From Chlorokybus atmophyticus (taxonomy: Eukaryota > Plantae > Mesostigma and Chlorokybus algae), in NCBI GenBank assembly GCA_009103225.1, contig RHPI01000810.1:1-64000 (forward strand): a DNA stretch of 64,000 nt, given 5' to 3'. Numbering within the stretch: position 1 is the first letter of the stretch; each line of letters starts with the position of its first letter. Shown piece by piece: positions 371 to 37,036 of this stretch. Both the position numbers and the translations under genes were made by a program. The notes under the pieces are model-generated. The model saw only the letters and a list, made by a program, of their open reading frames with translations, was not told the DNA's origin and ran no database searches.

Positions 371-3300
371 ATGAGTACTAGTAGCAACAACGAGGATTCC
401 ATCAATGACGATCCCAACCCACAAGAAATTAAGAAGGATACCAACAGTATGCATAGTGTTGCAGTTGCTACTACCGGTATTCCTGCCCCGAGAGCAGCAT
501 CTATCGTGCCTAAATTGGCACAAAGGAAGTTTTCAACGCCAACATGAATGACCTTCTCGGGGAAATCCCATGAAGGTGTTGGTCGGTGGATTTCACACTT
601 TTACCGTTCAGCGCGGTTATATCAGTGGTCTGAGGATGAGAAGTTTGATTTAGCGACCACATACTTGCGCGATGGTGCACAAGAATGGTTCGACTATTCT
701 GATTGTGATACTTGGGGACAATGTGAGAAAGCATTACGCGTGCGCTTTGACACTGATGATTCCAATGTGTGGACGACGAAATCAAACAGTCGTAAACAAG
801 AAGTTGGTGAATCAGTGCAATTATATGCAGATGGCGTTGAAGTCCTCTAGACAAACTCGGGGGGAAAACCTTCCCCGCAGCGTTGCGCAAGGTACGCTTC
901 ATTCAAGGACTTCTCCCTCACCTACATGAAAAGGTGACTGCACGCATACCCGAAACCTTTGAGGATGCATACGGGATGCGATAATACTTCGAGTCCGTGG
1001 CCTCCGTGCAACAGCAAACAAAGGCTAAAGACAAAGACAAGGTCAATGCCGAAAAAGCACGTGATCCGGCGTACAATGCACTTGAGAAAAAAGTTGATAA
1101 CCATACTAAAAAGCTTGAGCATTAGTGAACTCTCACACCCAAATGGTGAAGCAAACCAAGTACTCCAAGTACAAAGGCGGTGACAAACCTGAGTCAAGCT
1201 ACAATGGTGCTAAGAAAAATTTCAACAGAAGCAACCTGCACTGCACATATTGTGACAAACTGGGTCACACTGTAGGAGGATGCTTCATCAAAGAGAGGGA
1301 TGATTTGCGCAAGCAAGTGCACAGCAGTTCTTCACAGCGGCAAGTGCAGACAGTAAGTTTGCAAGACTTGGTCACTGAGGACAATGCCTTTGCAATCACA
1401 AGTTCTACCTCAAGTGGGAAGGTCTTTATACCTCCTAAAGCTAAGGTGAGAGCAAGTGTGTCACAAGTTGACATTACAGATTTACTGAATGTACAAGTAC
1501 CTAAAGGTGCTAAGTACAATGTGATCAAACAGTTGGACAGTATGACAGCTAAAATCTCAATCAAGCAATTGCTCAAGGTTAGCCCTGAGTATCGTCAACA
1601 ATTGCTCGATTCCTTGCATGGGTTGGCCAATGAAACTGATGGTATCAAAACCAAAGAGTTTCCCAGCCCTATTGCCACCATGGCTGTGCGTTACAAAAAT
1701 ACAATAGCAATGGTTCACGTCAGTGGCCACGAGTTGGAAGCTGTCGTAGACTCTGGTGCGGCATGCACCGTAATGGGCATTGCGACTGCTCGCAAGCTTA
1801 GGCTTGACAAAACAATGCAAGCCACAACGCGCACTATGCGCGTAGCCAACGGACAGGAATGTTCCTTCCTCGGCACATTACCACAGCATAACATCGCAAT
1901 TGGCAATGTGACACAAGCAGTGGACATAGAAATAAGTCCATCATTGGACTACAATCTGTTGATTGGTACAAGCTGGCTGCATAAAGCCAGTGCGAAGTTG
2001 GATTATTCAACCCTACAAATGTCATTTGCATGTAAGCCACATGGCCAGAGTGTTAAAGTAGACTTACACTTCACGCATGAGCCTGCATTAACTTGTTCGG
2101 TGGCTGCAACTTCGCGCGAACAACCCGCACATACCGTTTGTGATATTGCAAACACACAATTCGAAGTGTCGGATACATTGACACATGATGAACAACAACA
2201 GTTGATGGTACTGTTGGGATCCAGCACAGACAACTTTGCAAAAAAGTGGGAACCTCTCTCTCACACACCTTTGATCAAGCATGCCATTGACACAGGGGAT
2301 GCAAGGCCTATCAAACAGAGACCTTACCGTTTGTCGTTGATGAGACGCAAGCAGGTCAATGAGGAAGTTGAGAAAATGCTCAATGCAAACATCATTCGCC
2401 CTTCCAAGAGTCCGTGGGCCTCACCAGTAGTGATGGTGCCAAAGCCGGATGGAAGTATACGCTTCTTTATTGACTATCGCAAGCTAAACGCTGTGTCAAA
2501 GAAAGACGTGTACCCACTTCCGCGCTGCGATGATGTGTTGGAAAAAGTGGGCAATGCCAAGTTCTTTTCAAGCTTTGACGCTTTGCAAGGATATTGGCAA
2601 GTACTTGTCAAAGAAAGTGACAAAGAAAAGACAGCATTTGCCACATGATGGCTTATACGAGTGGAATTGTATGCCATTCGGGTTAACCAATGCCCCGGCA
2701 ACATTTCAACGCTTGATGAATGAAGTGCTCAAGGACTACATCGGTGACTTTGTCACTATGTACTTTGATGATATACTCATCTTCTCAAACACTTACAAAG
2801 AGCATCTTAAACACTTGTAAAAAGTGTTTGATGTATTGCGAAAGGCAGGCATCAAGTTGAATGCACAAAAGTGCTTATTTGCAATGACAGAAGTTAAGCA
2901 TTTAGGCCACCGTGTGTCTGTGGCAGGTACACTACCTCAACTAAAAAAGGTTGAAGCTGTGCGCAATTGGTCCGCACCTAAGAGTGTGACACAAGTCAGG
3001 TCTTTTCTCGAGTTGGCCTCATATTACAGACGGTTCATTCCCAACTTTGCACAAATTGCGCAACCATTGCATGACCTCACCAAAAAGGGGTTAGAGCTTA
3101 AGTGGGGGCCGGAACAACAGCAAGCATTTGATGCGCTCAAGCTAAGCCACAGCGCCTGTGTTGGTCAGATCTAAACCAGGCAAACCAATTGTCTTACTGA
3201 CTGATGCCTCAGACTTTGCACTTGGTGCGGTACCAGCACAGTACACAGATGATGGCAAAGAACAAGTCATTGCGTATGCGAGCAGATCGCTCAACTCCGC

Positions 3301-4506
3301 AGGGAAAACTACAGTGTCTTTAAAAAGGAGTGCTTGGCCATCGTGTGGGGTGTCTCAATGTGGAGAGTGTACTTACATGGCAACAAGTTCACTGTACTCA
3401 CAGACCATCACTCTTTGAAGTGGTTGATGACCACAAAGGATTTCACAAATCGGCTTGCCCGATGGGCTCTGAAATTGCAGCAATATGACTTTAACATTCA
3501 GTACCGTCCTAGTGAAAAGAATGGCAATGTGGATGCACTGAGCCGCATGCCTGTCTCAGACCGGAAAATACCGCCGCTGATGCCAGTGACAATGGTACTC
3601 ACCGTGGGGGCAGTTGAAGCTCAGGTGAGCTTCGGTCTCACAAGTGAGGAGCTCACTGATAGCTCAGACTCATACTCTCATCTGAGTGATGAAGTTGAGA
3701 AATTGTTCGCAACTCCAAGTGAGATAGCTTCAGAAGAAGCTCTGACACCCAAGGGAGAGTCATCTCCACCTCGCAAGAAATTGCGGTGCTCGTATTGCTA
3801 CATACGCAATCAGCATGAGACTAGAAATTGCCCACACCAGTCCACCATCAAGTTCAAAAGTTTGCTTGATGATGCACAAGTAATTGATTACCTCACAAGG
3901 GGGAAGGATGCATTAACTGAAAAGTCCCGAGGTATCAGAAGAAAGGTGATCAGCAGAGCCAAACGCTATTTTGGTAAATGAATAAGGTTTGTGGCTGAAG
4001 TCAACCTCTACAAATGAGAATGACAGATTGATCCCTCCACATTAGACCCGTGCTAAGTTCATTGCGGATGCGCATAATAATTTAGGCCATCATTCCGCCA
4101 CAGTGGTGTGCGAATGGCCAAGAAAGCGATGCTTTTGGTACAAAATGGAGGAGGCGGTCAAAAAGTATGTGAAAACATGCACAGAATGCCAAGCTAACGC
4201 TCTGAAAGTGCGTGAACCTGCACCACTCAAGCCAATCAAAGTGAGTGCAGTAGCATTTGAGAGAGTAAGCACTGACCTCATAGGGCCGATTGAGCCACCA
4301 ACCCTCCGTAGCAACACATACGTGATCACTATCATTGATCACCTGACCAAGTGGGCTGAGGCTCGAGCCTTGCCAAACAAAGAGGCAAGAAGTGTCTATC
4401 CCTTCATCATGGAGGACATTATAGCCCGACATGGCCTTCCCAAGATCTTGCAAAGTGATCAGGGAAAGGAGTTTATGCAACAGCAGATGCTCGACGAGTT
4501 GGACAT
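371..4506 (+). pseudogene. Degenerate Ty3/Gypsy gag-pol (gag, CCHC, protease, RT, RNase H, N-terminal half of integrase)
   Basis: Retrotrans_gag-like YLRDGAQEWF; knuckle CTYCDKLGHTVGGC; protease VDSGA; [29 protein letters not shown]; RNase H LLTDASDFALGAV; integrase HHCC and STDLIGP...SDQGKEF. Domain order PR-RT-RH-INT; several stops and frameshifts. Confidence 0.95.
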
Positions 4507-5031
4507 CATTAGGCGAGGTTTGACATTGACCGGTCCACTGGCTTGAAATGCCATCGAGCATGGTACGGTCTCAGGCCTGCTGCCGTGGCCCAATCGTTTG
4601 CGACTCAAGTGTCCACTGCTCGAGCCACTCGCAGAGCGCCACATCCGACTTCACAGCTGACGTGGAAGCGTTTGGTGTCTGACCCCAGTAAAGTTGGGCT
4701 CCCACCCCCACCTTTTGCAGTGGCGGCTTGAGCAAGCTGGCGGTGGCGGCGGCAGGGCCGCTGTGGACCAGGCCTGTTCACGGCGGCGGCGGCGGCGGTA
4801 GCGGCGTGGAAGGCGGCATGCTCATGTGTAAGTGTTGAGGCATTTGCCGTTCTTGCACGCTCAGGCACTTGCAACAACCGCGAAATGTTAGCCGCGCACG
4901 GATTGTCTTATGTGACGGCTTGAGCAGGCGGCGTGGACTCCACCCTCCACACCTTCACACTCCGCCTTCGGAAGGCGCAGTGTGAAGGTGTTGATGATGG
5001 TTATTAGAGCGTACGGCCAGCTGGCTGCAAG

Positions 5032-5586
5032 ATGGGCGAGGTACAAAGCCAGCTTGCCCTCGCCTACCGCCCAAGTAAGTCTGTCTGCGTGTGTGCCAAC
5101 GTGCTTGGATTGTGCATTGCACGCTGTGGCATGTGGGTACAGCTTATTTGTTGGCGTGCGTGCTTGATTATTATATGAGCATGCATTGTCACATGCAGGG
5201 CGTCCTCGCCTCCGCCCTGCAAGCTATCGATTCGGGGCATTGAGCTTGTCGGTGGGGAGTTGTTATGAGATCTCCCCCCCTCAAGTTGGTTTTTGGGCAG
5301 ACTTGGCAACGACAGAGCTGGAGCGGCGCAAGCCGTGGGTTGTGCAAGTGCTGGCGCTGCAGCCTAACAAGGGGCGTGCAAGTTTCTTGCGTGCGCGCTT
5401 CTTCGTGCTCCACCACCACCTTCAACTCCAACATACGCTGCAACTGCGTTTGCATGGTAAGCCATAAAGGATTAGGCAAGGAATCAGTATAGGGACTGTT
5501 ACTTGCACGCACTTTTGCCTCACATGTAGATGTGTTGGTGTATTTGTGTGTGTTTGCATGCGTGTTCGCGTGCTGGTGCAGCTATA

Positions 5587-5625
<39 letters not shown>

Positions 5626-6908
5626 CGCGCGCGCGCGCGCTTGAAGCTGCAGCTGATCATGTGTGCTGGTGCGGCATTGATGTGGCACTGCAATACTCTA
5701 GTAATGTATAGTTTTGTTAGTTAACGCTTGTGTGCAACCAGAGTTGTTTGAGGGATGTGAAGAAGAGGATTTAGATCCGCGGCTGATCAGCAAGCCATGC
5801 GTTGTCCTGCCCTGGCATATGTTTGCCATCAAGTATGCTCGGGCACAACCACCACCCGACAAGCCAGTATACTTCTACCAGTACAAGTAGGTGTATCAGT
5901 CATGAACACTGCCAGGTGTTAACCTTTGAGAGCATGATGGGCATGTGATGGCTTGCATATGTTGATATACAATGCGCTTTTGTACAGGTATTTTCTGCCG
6001 AACGAAGACAGCGAGTTCGGGCGCATCAAGCTCAGGAGGAATGTAGTCAAGTTCTGGCGAATGAGCTTCATGGAGTTGCCAGAGCTTGTCTTGGCTGGTT
6101 TTGATCAACTACTGATTGCTGCTGTGCAGTCCACCATGTCGGCAACAACGCACACAGCCAAGACTGCACGCCTCCATGGCATTCGTAAGTGTCATCATAT
6201 TCTGGTTGTTGTCATTGACAATGTTTGCATGTGTGCCGTACTGATACTCTTGTGCACATAGCGCATGAGTGGGTGGCCTCTCGATTGCGCCAGCTGCCGT
6301 GCAAACAATCCCCGAGATCCTTGTTGTTCCACCCTTTCGTGGATGATGATGAGTGTGCCGTTGCAGTGCAGCGGTTCCGGGATCCACTTGACGCCTTCAT
6401 GCCTGGGTGGGCTGAACGCTCTTTTCCTTTCGAGACTCGAGCAGTTATCGTGGTGCAAGAAGTAGTGATGCGCTACTTCTTCTTTCGTCAACTATTGTCA
6501 GGTTGGTAGTTATCGTATGGTATTGTGCTGTGCATGCATTGTGTTGATTCAAGTCGATGTTGTCTGCCCGCAGTTAGGTGTCCTTTCCACACTGCTAGTG
6601 TTGAAGGGGAAGGGGTGGAAGCCATTGTGAGCTGGCGATCCTTCTCGTCCACATTGCAAGGGAATGTCAGTACCTTCAGCATTGCATGCGGAGGTGATGT
6701 ATATGGCAGCATAGACTTGGTGGCACCTTGCTCTCTTAGTCAGCTTCTGGAGGCTATCACGGATGAGGGCTGGCATATGCCTAGCAGTTGGCGCTTTCGG
6801 ACTGCTCACGGAGTGGTGGACTTGGGCGAAGAGGAGAATGTGAATGCATTGCACCCGCACACGGAGGGGTGGGTGGTGCCACATGTCGTAGAAGTTATTG
6901 TTGTATAG
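5032..6908 (+). CDS. BAH-domain protein, 6 exons, 405 aa, apparently intact
   Basis: Exons 5032-5074, 5199-5456, 5742-5886, 5988-6184, 6262-6501, 6574-6908; all introns GT-AG and phase-compatible (1218 nt). BAH-like motifs: YRFGALSLSVGSCYEISPP, KPWVVQVLAL, FLRARFF, HELFEGCEEEDLDPRLISKPCVVL, VYFYQYKYFLPNEDSEF. Confidence 0.75.
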
Positions 6909-6997
6909 AGCAAATTGTGGATGTGTTTATATCCTGGTTTTGGTCTTATGCTTGACATGTGATGTGCATGCATGCGACATCTCTTCACAATAGGATG

Positions 6998-9900
6998 TTA
7001 GCCAGATTGATAAAATTCTGCAATATTTTTCCAATGCTCTTGAGGTGCTATGTCTGCGTCAAGTTCTAACTCATCTAGTTGCTGCATAGCTCGCTGCAAC
7101 TCTGTCAATTGTCCACCGACTACCCGCTTGCCTGTGGTTGTCCTAAAACCACGTTCAGTCCACTTGATAGAGCCATCGCCCTCGACCAAGCGCGCGCGCA
7201 TTGCAGCTAAGTATTCCTGTCGCATTCTATGGTGAATGCGACGCAACTCAAAGTGCAGGACTTGAGCAAGTGGGCAATCGTGTGCAGCTCCGCCACCATG
7301 GTTGGTATGCGCTTGCCACGCCGCCTTGAACCTCCAATGTGACTTCTCCATCGACTGTGTGCTCCAAATGGCCAAAGATCCTCCCGACGAATCGCTGCTG
7401 ATAAAATCGGCCGCGTGGCACCATAAGAGGTGCATGTGGTGAGTGACATGATGCGAACCCCAACAGCAAATAAAGCTCTCCATGAATTCGTTGATGCAAT
7501 CCTGTATGAAAGACACACCGCCAATTAAATAAAAACGCGAATGGCAATCAAAGGCGATGGCATGTACGCATGCGCACGCAAGGGCTATCAACTTACTTGA
7601 AACTCTCCTCTTCTTCGGTCACGGTCAATGCCGTGAAGTACATGGATAGCCGCTTTAATGCCAACCACACGTCACGCTTTTGCGCACGGCGGTTGAGATC
7701 AACATCCCCCTCGGCAGCCAGGATCGTGCGGTAGTTGTCACCTTTAAACACATAGCCCATTCGATTACATTTTCCCACATGCCGGTTGCAACTAGAAAGC
7801 TTACCAGATAGCAAAGCACGGCAAGTTGTATCTTTCAAGGAGATCTTGGCAGGGTAGTGGTCGCGTCCAGCTTTACCATCCGCTACAATCTTACAGTTGC
7901 CACCCTGGATGCCAAGGGCACTTAAGGCCTTCTCAAGCTTGGCAATGCGCGCGCGTGCAGCGTCATTTTCGCCACCATCAAATGTCCATGCATAGTTAAT
8001 TAACAACCACAACACCTGCACCAAAGCAACACAATTGGAATAGCGCAACACGCAACCGCGCTCACTCGCACGTCAGCTGCACATGCACTCGGTCGTCACC
8101 TTTTCGACTATGCGCATGTCCGCGTGCATTGTGCTTAAATGCATACGCTCCGGAGGCAGTGGGAACACCGTGCTGAAAAAGCTGTGCCGTGGGCCACAAG
8201 CATGTAAACCACGGTGCTCCTTTTGGCAATGTCCGTATAGACAAGGTTCTCGCGTTGTTGCACCGAGCGGACACCCCGCGCATACTTTCAACGTCTTCAA
8301 ATCGGCCGCAACATGACACTCGACCATATAAGATCCGCTAGATATCTGCCCAGCCAACCTCATGTTAAGCACATATCAGCGAGAGTAAACCATAACAAAG
8401 GCACAGTACTACAAGTAGTACTTGTAGCGGCTCATGGTCCTCGCAAGACACGTCATGGCGCAAGATGAAGGCGCGTATGCTTTCGGTGTTGGCCATGATA
8501 TCCACTTGATTCTCTTTGGCCACATGGAATGCCGCAAGCGGTAGCATGTCATACTCGGACATGACCTTGCCAAGACCGCCCTCCGCTGCAGTAAATGCAT
8601 AATTCATGATCCGGAAGCAAACTCGCTCAATCTTACGATCGTTATATTCGGTTGTCTCGTCCAGGTAAAAGCAAATCATCAGCTTGTCATTGTCACCTAC
8701 CATAGGTAAAGTAATTGTTGACAATCCACTCACGAAGCACTGCACAATGTCAAGGAGTTCCGTGTTCACCTAGCGGCAAGTTGTACAAGCGCAAGGCTAA
8801 GTCAATCATCCTAGTTATGTCCAGCTCCTTGCCGTTGTTGATGTTAGTGTCCGACATGGTAATGCAGTAAGTCAGGTCATTGATGTTCCTGCAATGTATC
8901 GCAATCAGCATGCATATCTGTTACCTCCAGCACCCGAATGTCACATGTGGCACAGAGCGTGTCATACCTGCGCTCGTTGGCCAACTGCCATGGGTTAATG
9001 CTAGCCCCGGTCGATGTTGTGCGTGTCCTCATACTCAAGCCTCGGATGCTTGCCTGCTGTTGAAGTAGCTTGTATAGTCCAACCCAAGTTTGCTCGCCGC
9101 GTGTGTTGTCAAGCACAGAGCAGATGTCCTCCACTCTCACCCCATTTAGCATGTTGTTCAGCCCATCGCTCTGTACTTACCAACACATGACTCAACCCGA
9201 AGCATTGCATCAGCAAAGGAAATTGTGTTGCCACACACCTGTAACGCCCGCACAACTGCGCTGTACTTCTCGTGGCCTAGGGCCACGCGCAACTCTTTTC
9301 CTTGCATGAGCTGCGCAAACGCAGCCCCAAACTCTTCCGCTCTTTCTGTGCTGGTCAGCTCCCTCCAGCGAGGGACGAGAAGATCCCTGCACTCGCGCAT
9401 ACAACACATAAGCAACAGGGTCAACAACACAACACCACGATACTACTGCATATGCTGTGCATGCAGGGGCGTTTACACTCACTTCACTTTCTGTGTCGTC
9501 CTTGCCTTGCCACTCTTGCGTAGCTCCATAAATTTAACAGCCGAGGGCCGAGCTGCAGCCTTCATGCGTGACAAAGCAAAGTTGACCCTTTTTACCTCTT
9601 CTAACCTGCTGGTCAACTTTTCTTCTGTAGCCCGCAATTGCGCCTGTAGCTTCTCTGCCCTTTCCTCTGCCACTGCTCGTGCTCGTGCAAGCGCCTCACT
9701 GCTTTCTTGCTGCAGACGTGCCGCAACCGCTTCGGCATCAGTTTTGGCCTTGGCAGCCTCAGCTTGCACGCGTGCAAGTTCTTGCTGCAGCCTCATGCTG
9801 TATGAGTGCATGTTTGCAGCATTCGCCTGCAAGGCTGCACATGCCATGACATGCTGACGCAATGTCTGCTCCCGCTCAGTTAAATGGTTATGCAAGCAAC

Positions 9901-10108
9901 CACCAGATATCCAACGCAAGAATGAGGTTGGGTTGGTAAAAGGCAAGGCCGGGCTGTAATTGCTACCTACAATCCAATGATTCCATCCTGCCTGCAACTC
10001 CGCCTCTACTCTATAATGTACTTCGAATTTCTGCTTCTTTTTCACCGGGCTTGGCCGCGGTGAGGTGATACCCAGTCGGGGAGCTATGGGAGTGAAGTTG
10101 AGCGCCAT
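6998..10108 (-). CDS. RAG1/Transib/CMC-like DDE transposase, about 9 exons, ~830 aa, one probable 1-nt frameshift
   Basis: Approximate exons 10108-9483, 9386-9239, 9170-8968, 8889-8770, 8702-8421, 8346-8098, 8017-7806, 7742-7597, 7501-6998. Motifs: NBD-like ARPSAVKFMELRKSGKARTTQKVKDLL; D1 CFYLDETT (8659-8661); LPLAAFHVAKEN; D2 VAADLKTL (8301-8303) followed by PCLYGHC; STMHADMRIVEKVLWLLI; VTHHMHLLWCH (HxxxxH, 7415-7432); GSLAIWSTQSMEKSH (E at 7346-7348). Confidence 0.8.
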
Positions 10109-11078
10109 AGCAGGCCCTGCAAAAGTGGTTGTGCCAGTTTGTGCAATGATTGCGTGCATGTGTGTGCACGCCAGCTGCATGGTTGAGAGTGCTAGTTGAC
10201 TGTGTAAGCAGGGACTGTGCGCGCGTGCTTGCACATGTGCATGCACGTCTAATGCAGTGACTGCGTGCGGGCATTGCTTGCATATGTGCATCTCACTGCA
10301 TGGTTGTGAACGCTCTGACTGCGTGCGTGCATTCACAAAAGCGGACGTAACTGGATGTGTGTGTGGGGCGTGACCATGACTCAGTGTATGCACAACACTG
10401 AGTAGGTGTTGTGCATACACTGACGGTGCGGGCAATGCTGGCGTGCATGCAGTGCCTGTGTACGGGCTTTTCTTGACTGACTACACATCACAACTTGTTT
10501 GTGATGTGTAGTCACTCAAGGAATACCCTGCCTGCCTGTGTACATAGCATGTGCAGAGTGCGTGCCTGTATGTCCGTGTGAGCCTGTCAATGTATCCAAG
10601 GTAACTTGCATGAGAGCTTACCTCCTGGTTGGACGGGCCTCAAGTCCTCCTTGCTACCCCAATGCACAGCACAACTGCTGTGCACAGTGCTCGGCTGGTC
10701 TTGACGCCAACACCTGCTGATGCCGCCGCCGCCGCCGCTTGCATGGAGGGTTTAGTGTGGTCTGTTGGGAGAGGTTTAGCTGCCTAGTTGGTGTCCTACC
10801 CCCTTTCTACTGGTATCCTACGCCTGCTCCAGTGTTCATGCATGACACCCCCACCTACCTACACTGGCAGCTGCTCCCCTGCCACTGCCCGCCATGCACA
10901 CAACCCATCACAATACGTTTTGGTGTCCGGGTCTCGGGTGGTCTGGTGACTGACCCCATTGTTTCATTTCAAACGAAGTTCGACCGGCAAGGCCGGAATT
11001 GCCTAATCGCGCGGCGGCCACGTGACCTCGATAGAGCGGCCTCACAATGGACCTTTTTGGGTCGAACCTCGCCTAATG

Positions 11079-11700
11079 AATGCAGATTGCACATTATAAA
11101 TCTGCTTCATACCACCCACAAACTAATGGGTTGGTTGAGAGATTAAATAAAACCATCAAATCTGCAATTGCCAAGTACGCACAGACGTACACATACAGGT
11201 GGGATGATATGTTCCCTCCTGCAATGTTGGGATATCGCGCGATGCGCCAGCGCAGCACGACATTCCCCCCTTTTCGCATGCTGTACAATTGTGAACCACG
11301 CCTCCCTATCGGTGCAATTGATGGGAACAATTTTTCAAGTCATGGACTTGGAAGATTTGGACGGAGAATGGTTCATTTGAAATGGACAGGCATTGCAAAA
11401 GTTGCATGAACATGCGGCAGAAAATATTGCTGAGCTCAGGCAAAGCAATCTGCTGAATTTATCTCGCAAAACTCCCATCAACCCTCGCAATGCGTCTTGG
11501 TTGAAAAGGAAGCTACGTGTGAAGTTACGCGTGCCCTCGCGCACAACTTGCTTAGCACCGAAAATGGCTTGTGAATTACGAGATCAAACGCATTTGCATC
11601 AAAGAAAGAACTCAAGTGGAAATCAGGCATCTGCACACCGGCACCTACAGAACGGTGCATGTCAACAGGCTTGCCCCTTATTTTGTGAGGGGTGAGGAAA
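11079..11700 (+). pseudogene. C-terminal half of Gypsy A integrase
   Basis: MQIAHYKSASYHPQTNGLVERLNKTIKSAI...AMLGYRAMRQRSTTFPPFRMLY continues the catalytic core broken at 4506. Confidence 0.92.
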
Positions 11701-34473: not shown

Positions 34474-37036
34474 TCAACCCCATCGACCATCATACATACA
34501 CAGCTTGCAACAACGCTCACCTGGTTGTCCCTGACCAGAAGATGCCAGATCTGCAAGGGTTTCAGCACTGAAGCTTGCTGCAAATCTGTTGGCGGCCAAT
34601 GATGCCTGGCGATTTTCTCCAGGGACGGTCATGTTTTGCAAAAGTGAGCTGGCGAAGTCATGCGACTGCAGCGTCGAGGTGTCGTGCAGGTTGCGGTAGG
34701 GGGAACTCTCAGTAGTGGTTGCTGACACCGAGCCCATACCCATGGTGTATGTACTCGAGTCTAAGGCGAGGCTGAGGCAGCCTGCCTCGTTGCCACCACC
34801 ACTAACACCTGGTCTGTTGGCCATGAAGGCCTCTGCAAGAGGACCTGGCATCTCCCAAGAGCCAGAGAGGGGTGCAGACAGAAGTGATGTTGAGGAAGGA
34901 CGGCTAGAGCGCTGTGGGAAACTGATATGCTCTGCAATGGAGCTGAGGTTACGCTGTTGGCTGCTGGCTTCAGAGCCCGCAAGTTCACGGCGCCGTCGCT
35001 GCAAATCTAAAACAGATTCGCTTTGCTGTTGCGACTGCTGCAGCTGCTGCATAGATGGCTGTGCTTGCTGAGGTAATTGCTGCCTCAGGTGGTGTGAGAG
35101 CTGCTGTGTTGGTTGCCACGAGCCGGCTAGCGAATCCCCAGCAGACTGAGCTGTTCGGGACACGGTCAAGGAAGCACGAGAGGTGCTATACGGATTCGCG
35201 GACGCCATGCCAGGCAGGTCCAGGTAGGCAGATGCACTGTCAGGCACAAAGGAACCAGCGAACAGGGACTTGCTGGGCGTGCTGCCAGCAAAGCCAGATA
35301 GGTACCCAGGTTGAAGAGCAAACGATGTGCTGCCGACAAACCTGGAGGGCATGCCGGACATGAGATGACTGCCGGAGGCTGAGTAACGTGCCAGGTCGGT
35401 GAACATTGGCAAAGCCGGCATCTTCCCGGCATTCCCCGTAAATGTATTGCCTGCACTGCGCGTCAACATGTCGAAATCGCACGACAGTGGATCATTGGTT
35501 GCCATGAGGGGTGGAAACCTGCCAACCAAAACATTGGTCAGCGCTGGCAGATGAAACTCGTCCTTGCCTTTGCTGAAAGCGACAACTTACCCTGAGTCCT
35601 CACGAAGTGCCAAATCTACACCCAGACTCACATCCAGCAAGTTTGCGCCACTAGCCAGGTCTGACATGCAGCTCATGCTGTGACTTCGTGGAAAGTTTGT
35701 GCCTTGCTGGCCCCATAGGTCGCGTGTAAGGTCATGACGCCTTGTGAGTGCGCCATGGGTCAAGTGGTGTGACTGCGTGACATGCCTGGTAAGCAAGTGG
35801 TGTGACAATGACTGACGGGCACAAGAGCGCTGCACTTACCGCAGAGGCGAAGGGCTGTGGCTTGTTCAGCTCAAGGCTGGAGGCTGCCAAGGTGGACGCG
35901 TGCTTATGATCGTCATGCAACTCGGGTGCTCGGGTGGCAAGCGATGTCACAGTTGAGGTGGAAGGGGAAGGCAGCGTTGAGCAGGTGTCTTGGGATGTAA
36001 CAGAAACAGAGCCATGCTTCCGTGGTCTATGACGCCCCCTATGCATGTGTGCCTCGCAGTACTTTTGCATGGGAACAACAGCTCGCGAACAGCGCCATTT
36101 CTTGCCGTCCGTGCGCCGGCACCTGTTTGGCTGGTCGCCGGCACCCCAATCTTGCTGGGCTCCCCACATCGCCACCGGTGCATAACCCCCATGAGGATCC
36201 TGCTCAAGTCCTGTTGAAGGCCACATGCTGCTTGGCGGCAAGATACCTCGCGACAACCCGGCATGGAATTGATACTCTTCAGTTGGGTCGGAAGGCAGGG
36301 CTACGCGTCGATGAACATTACGCCCACCGGACAACGGAGAGGCCTCCAGCAGCATGAACAGCAGCTCTTGTGGAACAGGAGCGCCAATGACAAGATACTT
36401 GTAGATGAGCATCTGGATCTGCAGCTGCCGCTTTTGGCTTGGTTCGAAGTAGACATGGTCCACTGCAGGTCGAGAAGACGAAGGCACGGCATCACTACGA
36501 GCTGCGCAAGAACACATCGACCAACCCATGCTTCAGACAGCAATCGCTGGTGGCACACAGCATACCACCCACTAACGCTGTTCACAACCAACAACTGGCG
36601 ATGCTGTTGCCTTGCAAGAGTAAGGCATCACAAAACAATGCTGAACAAGGCAACTCGGGCAAAAAGCCAGCGGAAACTCCTGATTTGCCATTGAATCATG
36701 GGCTTGAATAATGTATGCAACAGATACAGAAACTTACGAACTGCAACAACTACAACAACACAGCCAACTGTGTGCGAGCTGTGTAACTATACTGTAAACA
36801 CACCAATCCGACAGGCCGTGACAAGCAGTCGCCTAAGTGCCCAAGATGCAAAAAGCAGGGTATGCACAGTTGGGTTGGCTGACAAGGAGCAAACGTATTG
36901 ATGCTAGCAGAGCGTGCTTACTTTCTTCTGGCGTGACATCTGGCAGAGCACAAAGTGCTGACAAGTCGCTGTCCGCCATGGCAGCGTTTGCCGTAAGATC
37001 GCCAACACCAGTCGTACGAAGGCTTAGATCCATCAA
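34474..37036 (-). CDS. GRF: Growth-regulating factor (QLQ + WRC transcription factor), multi-exon; outer exon limits approximate
   Basis: QLQ: FEPSQKRQLQIQMLIYKYLVIGAPVPQELL (~36350-36452); WRC: RCRRTDGKKWRCSRAVVPMQKYCEAHMHRGR (~36015-36125); C-terminal GPLAEAF resembling the GGPL motif (~34830-34850); GTAAG donors near 35840 and 35590. Confidence 0.93.

Follow-up and report, generated by a model that had tools for sequence, protein, structure and literature searches.

A stretch of 64,000 nucleotides from Chlorokybus atmophyticus (contig RHPI01000810.1, positions 1 to 64,000; hereafter the window) carries a transposase gene on the minus strand. Inverted-repeat analysis of the window showed that this gene is enclosed by a terminal inverted repeat (TIR) element of 6,572 bp. 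Based on the ends of the element, its insertion site, a near-identical transcript and the predicted structures of related proteins, we consider it likely that the element is a cut-and-paste transposon copy in decay, 6.6 kb long with two genes between its TIRs, that inserted into a Ty3/gypsy retrotransposon. Its transposase would form a lineage of its own in the CACTA/Mirage/Chapaev/Transib (CMCT) clade, outside both Transib/RAG1 and plant CACTA and probably identical with Lanisha. The coordinates of all features are collected in Table 1.

Ends and insertion site of the element

The element is delimited by an imperfect inverted repeat of 35 nt, over which the two ends are about 77% alike. The first 14 nt of both ends are identical (CATTAGGCGAGGTT), and this string is found nowhere in the window other than at these two ends, where its copies are inverted relative to one another. 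The termini read 5'-CATTAGG...CCTAATG-3', and the CATTA terminus noticed in the original prediction is thus present at both ends. With the element set between slashes, the insertion reads GGACAT/CATTAGG...CCTAATG/AATGCAG.

The insertion target is the integrase gene of a Ty3/gypsy retrotransposon, which is encoded on the plus strand. Excising 4507-11078 in silico restores an in-frame integrase (ELDIMQIAHYKSASYHPQTNG). Since the integrase is in frame without the element, the length of the target site duplication (TSD) should be a multiple of three. The candidate copies, CAT on the left and AAT on the right, agree at two of three positions, and from this one imperfect case together with the reading-frame logic the target duplication is probably 3 bp long. 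A multiple of three fits the 3 bp of CACTA-type elements and not the 5 bp of Transib. As a check on the duplication, the window was searched for a second copy of either the element or its gypsy host, and none was found; a search of seven related contigs for complete elements with ends and duplications also found none.

Several other observations were made on the element and its host. The Ty3/gypsy-type long terminal repeat (LTR) retrotransposon occupies 500-4506 and 11079-about 12000 on the plus strand, with open reading frames (ORFs) for gag, protease, reverse transcriptase, RNase H and integrase and with several frameshifts. A search for subterminal repeats found no k-mer of 8-10 nt that occurs at least four times in the terminal 600 nt. 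Reading inward from the right end (11050-11078), CATTAGG is followed by 12 nt and then by CAAAAAGGT, an A-run at the spacing that the nonamer of a recombination signal sequence (RSS) has after a 12-bp spacer; we took this run as probably due to chance, the left end having no such run. The element also contains three near-perfect palindromes, each arm measuring 18-30 nt (4940-5000, 10381-10423 and 10464-10528). The first is about 430 nt from the left end, and the other two fall within the 506-nt intron in the 5' untranslated region of the transposase gene.

Transposase gene, transcript and lesions

Between 10108 and 6998, the minus strand has stop-free stretches in all three frames. They make up eight coding exons joined via seven GT..AG introns, which give one protein only if three lesions are ignored. 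The exon model comes from a public run, X1 (most likely RNA), in which a 2,273-nt contig is about 98% identical to the window. This contig is spliced over the seven GT..AG introns and has a polyA tail near 7004, the polyA site being visible as a polyT loose end before 7004. It confirmed the exons and reading frames, and it is contiguous over 8888-8422, which is accordingly free of introns. A second X1 contig links 10116 to an untranslated upstream exon ending at 10623, and the loose end at 10118 equals 10623-10652.

The window copy is dead, carrying one stop codon and two frameshifts. With the transcript version, exon 7 ends in ...EEEEREFQ and exon 8 runs on with DCINEF... in the frame of the H(4)H motif and GSLAIWSTQSMEKSH, so the apparent out-of-frame state of exon 8 is due to the loss of AGAG near 7603. 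The peptides on which the original prediction was built were all recovered on the minus strand of the window, split over three reading frames in this copy. The transcript copy also bears a nonsense codon of its own (GAA to TAA at 9622).

Comparing the window and transcript copies gives 6 synonymous differences, 30 non-synonymous ones and 2 that involve a stop codon. These counts suggest neutral decay of transposon copies and not a conserved host gene. They bear on the idea that the gene was domesticated from a transposase by its host and is no longer mobile, for which it can be said that a near-identical copy is spliced, polyadenylated and expressed. Against it, the gene is flanked by inverted ends, and the whole sits in another transposon. 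Both copies are also disabled, that of the window by three lesions and that of the transcript by a stop of its own, and the differences between the two give no sign of purifying selection. We therefore regard domestication as extremely improbable.

Protein family and catalytic residues

An exhaustive HMMER search with exon 8 gave 57 matches, the best of them 43-45% identical and nearly all of them fragments from environmental or transcriptome assemblies. A word-index search with exon 8 returned nothing, full-length kin being outside its length window, and the same search with the family alignment returned close kin only. The full-length relatives (P0012, P0058, P0059 and P0060) are 585-741 aa long. 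They are joined by a transcript-type relative with three ORFs, L001 (20-2765, JGI sample 3300017171), and by 19 further loci found with the C-terminal family alignment. The blocks conserved in the family are LDE...K.ERV...MN, VEWHLAGDLKTLKCMY......PC[LI]YC, IPL.RVHICTLHA..RI.EK and THY[MI]H[IL]LY.H......GSL.IWSTQGMEKSH.

A family profile built without the window rows matched the four main window pieces collinearly, at E values of 5e-36 (exon 8), 7e-24 (exon 5), 5e-20 and 3e-13 (exon 4), and matched the transcript-like protein at 3e-122. These collinear matches indicate that the motif peptides are not chance strings. A Pfam scan of all window exon pieces of the transposase gene found nothing beyond weak coiled-coil-type matches in the N-terminal exon. 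This agrees with the coiled-coil N-terminus that had been predicted, as does the lack of a RING match in exon 1. Judged by these searches, the transposase is part of a eukaryotic family that is widespread and has no Pfam model.

The presumed catalytic residues are well conserved, with D, D and E found in 16/18, 25/26 and 33/37 family rows, respectively. The family also has a Cys pair, PC[LI]YC, 20 and 23 residues past the second D; in mouse RAG1 the C(2)C pair lies 19 and 22 residues after it. The window and transcript copies have PCLYGHC (C4C) here, longer by an insertion of two residues, and a further CAGC lies just ahead of it. A Cys pair does follow AADLKTL, as had been predicted, but the CAGC chosen at that time is not the best candidate, and the counterpart of RAG1 C727/C730 is most likely PCLYGHC. 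The H(4)H consensus of the family is H[IL]L[YF].H, which appears as HLLWCH in the window.

The C(2)C and H(4)H motifs are jointly present in 14 loci and jointly absent in 7, which is what a single Cys2-His2 site would predict. In a tree of the C-terminal region, the split between ligand-bearing and ligand-less members is a single branch (98/97), so the joint loss of Cys and His counts as one event and not as independent evidence. The window groups with the ligand-bearing clade, while P0012 and P0060 are in the ligand-less sister clade.

Intron positions and frame breaks were also seen in the relatives. L010, L013, L015, L019, L020, L022 and others (JAEIGA01 and Ga... contigs) share one intron position within H(4)H, where THY[MI] meets H[IL]L. 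The window gene has no intron inside H(4)H, and its introns fall at other places. L001 belongs to the zinc-ligand-bearing clade and has an N-terminal coiled coil; its ORF is split into three frames, and one of the frame breaks lies in a GKGKGKG/GEGEGEG low-complexity stretch past the Cys cluster.

Predicted structure and fold

AlphaFold2 models were made of the relatives P0012 and P0060, not of the window protein. The P0012 model (59-row alignment) has a predicted local distance difference test (pLDDT) score of 84.7 and a predicted template modelling (pTM) score of 0.81, and the P0060 model (68-row alignment) has a pLDDT of 82.7. In P0012, the first RNase H strand carries D118, the fourth has D208 at its end, and a helix begins at E465. 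The three acidic residues of the model are thus placed as an RNase H-type DDE (Asp-Asp-Glu) enzyme needs them.

When Foldseek was run against the PDB, the first 49 matches were all RAG1, the amphioxus RAG1-like protein BbRAGL or HzTransib (E down to 1e-11), with template modelling (TM) scores mostly of 0.5-0.66 over about 600 columns; Hermes came next (E 3e-3, TM 0.24). With VIA-align, P0012 superposed on RAG1 459-1008 with Z 23.1 and a root-mean-square deviation (rmsd) of 3.4-3.7 A over about 447 residues, and P0060 with Z 21.7. The corresponding Z scores for P0012 and P0060 were 22.3 and 20.3 against HzTransib (21-480), and 21.0 and 19.7 against BbRAGL. The next folds were far behind, namely the P element (Z 12.4), ISCth4 (9.6) and Hermes (8.5) for P0012 and ISCth4 (8.8) for P0060. 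The structural comparison that the original prediction had proposed as a check thus came out in its favour at the level of fold for these two relatives, and the models confirm a RAG1-type fold for the family.

One predicted feature was not upheld. A motif resembling the nonamer-binding domain (NBD), RP..F.EL...K, had been placed ahead of the core; however, this pattern is not conserved in the relatives (it is absent from L001 and L010), and the structural alignments begin past the NBD, at RAG1 459. One poor structural row (rmsd 7.7) reaches back to RAG1 residue 408. In the P0060 model, three helices lie just upstream of the aligned core, and it is possible that they are the positional counterpart of the NBD.

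A shape search of the ESM Atlas placed unnamed rotifer and Mucoromycota clusters nearest, with rmsd values of 3.5-3.9 A over 450-490 residues. At an equal level (TM 0.51-0.65) were RAG1 clusters, an arthropod RAG1_RNase_H (Transib-like) cluster and three Transposase_21 clusters, the last aligned over 454-473 residues. One of these three is plant CACTA with DUF4218 and DUF4216, and its rmsd of 5.4 is poorer than that of the rotifer and Mucoromycota clusters. Because CACTA clusters fit the models as well as RAG1 does, the whole CACTA/Mirage/Chapaev/Transib group shares the architecture that runs from the dimerisation/DNA-binding domain (DDBD) to the C-terminal helices. RAG1 heads the results of PDB and Pfam searches since no other CMCT member has solved structures.

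Based on these models, an intact minus-strand gene would encode a DDE transposase of about 849 aa with an N-terminal coiled coil, a basic stretch and a catalytic core. The predicted order of modules in the core is that of RAG1: the DDBD comes first, followed by the pre-RNase H part, the RNase H fold bearing both D residues, an insert with the Cys residues, a helical insert with the His residues, the catalytic E and the C-terminal helices. By analogy with RAG1 and Transib, a transposase dimer would bind the CATTAGG... ends, and the D-D-E metal site would nick at the element boundary and release the element. Reinsertion would then proceed via a 3-bp staggered cut. The C..C pair of PCLYGHC and the H(4)H pair may together hold one structural zinc.

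Sequence comparison with RAG1 and CACTA transposases

The original prediction held that the catalytic core matches RAG1 and Transib motif by motif. When the exon 8 region was made into a profile and run against the complete set of PDB sequences, its ten best matches were RAG1 chains (E 0.24-0.65), and the alignment pairs H(4)H, GSxxxW and E with RAG1 ...YFHKTLAH...GSIGAWASEGNES. The catalytic E lies six residues past the W, as it had been placed by comparison with RAG1, in a block that the profile aligns marginally. A profile of the whole core found one RAG1 sequence in the PDB and nothing else (E 0.44). Pfam RAG1 was matched by three relatives (E about 0.003, 16 bits against a cut-off of 25) and was the sole family matched by more than two members. 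The RAG1 sequence signal is therefore marginal and confined to H(4)H...GSxxxW...E, one stretch of roughly 40 residues. Profiles of the D1-D2 region and the MH region had chance matches only in the PDB and did not find RAG1, and phmmer searches of single exon pieces against the PDB returned nothing. What stands of the motif-by-motif match is the agreement in fold and, marginally, the last motif block; for the D1-D2 and MH regions it had no statistical support, and we dropped the view that every motif matches RAG1 at the sequence level.

These matches could be taken to mean that the family truly belongs to, or is sister to, the Transib/RAG1 lineage and would be a Transib of the plant lineage with altered ends and TSD length. 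A protein-language-model feature search is also in line with this, since RAG1 and arthropod RAG1_RNase_H clusters scored 0.94-0.95 for P0012 and no Transposase_21 set was among the best 60. Furthermore, the spacings are near those of RAG1: the second D and the E are 257 residues apart in P0012 and 254 in mouse RAG1, W-to-E is 6 in both, and the Cys pair is similarly placed, as given above. On the other hand, all of the sequence matches are sub-threshold and come from the one short stretch, two of the region profiles do not find RAG1, and predicted CACTA transposases fit the models equally. The TSD is a multiple of 3 and not 5, and the ends are CATTAGG and not a heptamer. The prominence of RAG1 is also to be read in the light of its being the sole CMCT protein with solved structures. 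Divergent EnSpm-like lineages are reported to match RAG1 in HHpred as well (PMC12730594), which counts further against a Transib assignment. On balance, we consider such an assignment unlikely.

We were equally interested in a relationship to EnSpm/CACTA. With a threshold of E 1, hidden Markov model (HMM) searches of the window pieces and of 57 + 59 family sequences (about 110) found no match to Transposase_21, DUF4218, DUF4216 or Transpos_assoc, and no CACTA gene that could serve as a comparator was found in the window. Clustering within ordinary plant EnSpm/CACTA had been set beforehand as the outcome that would tell against the original prediction, and the lack of any Transposase_21 or DUF4218 match in the roughly 110 family sequences speaks against such clustering. 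Were the element a strongly diverged member of EnSpm/CACTA, its transposase being of the TnpD type and its second gene standing in for TnpA, this would be in keeping with the probable 3-bp TSD, the two genes and a terminus, CATTA, that is one base off CACTA. The feature search with exon 8 also had DUF4218 at rank 36 (0.85) as the sole named family among the matches listed, and the Transposase_21 clusters fit the fold. We treat the feature-search scores, those for P0012 as well as that for exon 8, as no more than leads. However, apart from the missing HMM matches, the plant CACTA cluster superposes less well than the unnamed rotifer and Mucoromycota clusters (rmsd 5.4 versus 3.7-3.9). In addition, the second gene is convergent and separate and not an alternative splice product, and there are no subterminal arrays. 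Taken together, these points make a CACTA origin very unlikely.

Placement of the family and its significance

Members of the CMCT clade have in common the C(2)C and H(3-4)H motifs, 5'-CA..TG-3' ends and duplications of 2-5 bp (PMC12730594). The element has all three, with C(2)C/H(4)H in its transposase, CATTAGG...CCTAATG as its ends and a probable 3-bp duplication. The lineage is thus a member of a known, broad transposase group. The original prediction had carried the caveat that this might be a distinct CMC/Transib-group lineage and not a direct relative of RAG, and the ends, the TSD and the equal fold match to CACTA support this. With regard to a specific RAG1/Transib affinity, the features of the element argue against it.

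Lanisha was first described in the moss Ceratodon purpureus (PMC8245031), and in a published tree it falls, with low support, between the Transib/RAG1 clade and the Chapaev+EnSpm side (PMC12730594). The streptophyte host of the window and the Mucoromycota and Cnidaria origin of the nearest Atlas clusters fit the host range of Lanisha. For this comparison we take the Repbase entries Lanisha-1_RhIr and Lanisha-2_StPi to be from Rhizophagus irregularis (Mucoromycota) and Stylophora pistillata (Cnidaria), respectively. Based on this agreement of host phyla and tree position, the family is probably the Lanisha superfamily, with the chances for and against being roughly even.

A number of points weigh against placing the family in a lineage of its own within the CMCT clade. 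This placement is set by structural distances, weak HMM matches and element features, and the evidence for the TSD is one imperfect pair (CAT/AAT) at a single insertion. The modelled relatives come from the ligand-less sister clade and are 28-36% identical to the window pieces. Moreover, the RAG1 clusters lead any Transposase_21 cluster in the feature search with P0012, and the only sequence matches in the PDB and Pfam are to RAG1, which leaves room for a closer tie to Transib. That the family is the sister group of Transib+RAG1, and not an offshoot of CACTA/Mirage/Chapaev (CMC), is accordingly a less favored but not negligible possibility.

The origin of the V(D)J recombinase has been traced to Transib transposons, and to our knowledge Transib is known almost only from animals. 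If the sister-group relationship were true, the full RAG1-type core, including the Cys2-His2 site, would predate animals and would have been present in cut-and-paste transposons of early eukaryotes. The early hosts would then have been streptophyte algae, fungi, cnidarians, rotifers and haptophyte-like protists, and the 5-bp duplication and heptamer/nonamer ends would be later innovations on the animal side. With this in mind, a family from a plant-lineage alga that superposes on the RAG1 core (459-1008) provides material on the age of this architecture and on the relation between Transib and CACTA. Some caution is called for. RAG1 is the only group member with solved structures and a well-populated Pfam family, so structure and profile searches will make every divergent CMCT transposase seem 'RAG1-like'.

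The present study provides a transcript-based gene model with its lesions, the reading-frame argument on the TSD, the region-by-region negative results, the covariation of Cys and His, the equal distance to CACTA and the Lanisha lead. Since the family is widespread, has no Pfam model and includes a near-identical copy that is transcribed in a related sample, it merits a curated model and a check of the Lanisha name.

Second gene and other features

The second gene of the element was delineated from ORF pieces and GT..AG sites read by eye. A Pfam scan of its exons, piece by piece at E up to 1, gave no match, so no Kelch or PHD domain of the RAG2 type was seen. Exon pieces ...KPWVVQVLALQPNKGRASFLRARFFV... 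and ...ELFEGCEEEDLDPRLISKPCVVLPWHMFAIKY... look BAH-like by eye and are without a Pfam match at the same threshold. Within a presumed intron of this gene, a (GT)n run gives way to a (GC)n microsatellite (5560-5645).

The window as a whole is eukaryotic and repeat-rich, with about 50% G+C. An ORF at 35732-36529 on the minus strand has QLQ (E 8e-07) and WRC (E 4.5e-18) domains and would encode a GRF-type plant transcription factor, which fits a plant-lineage (streptophyte) alga.

Table 1. Features of the element, its genes and its insertion site in the window
Feature	Position	Strand	Evidence or remark
Host integrase ORF, upstream part	4103..4506	+	ends ...QQMLDELDI; cut by insertion
Left TSD copy, probable (CAT)	4504..4506	+	flank comparison and reading frame
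Whole TIR element	4507..11078	.	inverted repeat; host integrase ORF broken at exactly these limits
Left TIR	4507..4540	+	starts 5'-CATTAGGCGAGGTT
Second multi-exon gene	4980..6908	+	convergent (tail-to-tail) with transposase gene; ORF pieces and GT..AG sites
Transposase coding region	6998..10108	-	ATG 10108, stop 6998-7000; about 849 aa if intact; pseudogene here
Exon 8	7004..7501	-	H(4)H, GSLAIWSTQSMEKSH with catalytic E, C-terminal helices, stop
GSLAIWSTQSMEKSH, catalytic E	7337-7381	-	exon 8
HHMHLLWCH	7415-7441	-	exon 8
Exon 7	7597..7741	-	carries lesion 3
Lesion 3	near 7603	-	four bases (AGAG, coding strand) missing versus transcript copy; exon 8 thrown out of frame
Exon 6	7805..8015	-	X1 contig
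Exon 5	8100..8345	-	AADLKTL (second D), CAGC, PCLYGHC, RMHLSTMHADMRI
RMHLSTMHADMRI	8109-8147	-	exon 5
PCLYGHC	8226-8246	-	exon 5
CAGC	8271-8282	-	exon 5
AADLKTL, second D	8289-8309	-	exon 5
Exon 4	8422..8888	-	pre-RNase H and first half of RNase H fold; FYLDETT; two of three lesions
FYLDETT, first D	8650-8670	-	exon 4
Lesion 2	8715	-	one extra base versus transcript copy; frameshift
Lesion 1	8750..8752	-	in-frame TGA stop; TTA in transcript copy
Exon 3	8968..9170	-	in relatives, start of part aligned to RAG1 DDBD
Exon 2	9239..9386	-	GT..AG joints 9385>9482 and 9170>9239
Exon 1	9483..10116	-	start codon; coiled coil at about 9542-9880; RPSAVKFMELRKSGK in basic tail
RPSAVKFMELRKSGK	9506-9550	-	exon 1
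5' untranslated exon	10623..10700	-	X1 contig; then 506-nt intron 10117-10622; upstream limit of exon not defined
Right TIR	11045..11078	-	ends ...AACCTCGCCTAATG-3'
Right TSD copy, probable (AAT)	11079..11081	+	flank comparison and reading frame
Host integrase ORF, downstream part	11079..11409	+	resumes MQIAHYKSASYHPQTNG; rve_3 match; YHPQTNG

Comparison with known systems

Within CMCT, Lanisha (GenBank MT647524; Ceratodon) is a lineage distinct from EnSpm, Chapaev and Transib, and in the published tree its branch adjoins the Transib/RAG1 clade; our comparison with it is by hosts and tree position only.

With RAG1, the RAG1L of amphioxus ProtoRAG and HzTransib of Helicoverpa, the family shares the predicted fold and the order of modules from the DDBD to the C-terminal domain (Z 20-23, rmsd about 3.5-4.1 A, 420-450 residues). 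Common to all are a D on strand 1, a D after strand 4 and an E on a helix, as well as H(4)H, GSxxxW, an E six residues past the W and, some 20 residues beyond the second D, the Cys pair. In contrast, identity is 11-15%, with sequence matches below significance. Transib elements have termini like the RSS heptamer, 5'-CAC[A/T][A/G]TG, and a TSD of 5 bp. The present element ends in CATTAGG instead of a CAC..GTG heptamer with nonamer, so that only CA..TG is in common, and its TSD is a multiple of 3 and not 5. Unlike RAG1, the transposase has a coiled coil, and no RING or zinc dimerisation domain was seen in exon 1. ProtoRAG has a convergent RAG2-like partner gene with a Kelch propeller, with or without PHD; the second gene of the present element is also convergent, and the piecewise Pfam scan gave no Kelch or PHD match for it.

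Compared with EnSpm/CACTA, the terminus CATTA has one mismatch from CACTA, subterminal repeat arrays are absent, and there is no HMM match to Transposase_21, DUF4218 or DUF4216. From W to E the family is spaced like RAG1, and the second gene is a separate convergent unit. Nevertheless, the predicted fold of the TnpD transposase is matched equally well, and both kinds of element have more than one gene, C(2)C plus H(3-4)H in the transposase, a terminus in CA... and, in the present case probably, a 3-bp TSD.

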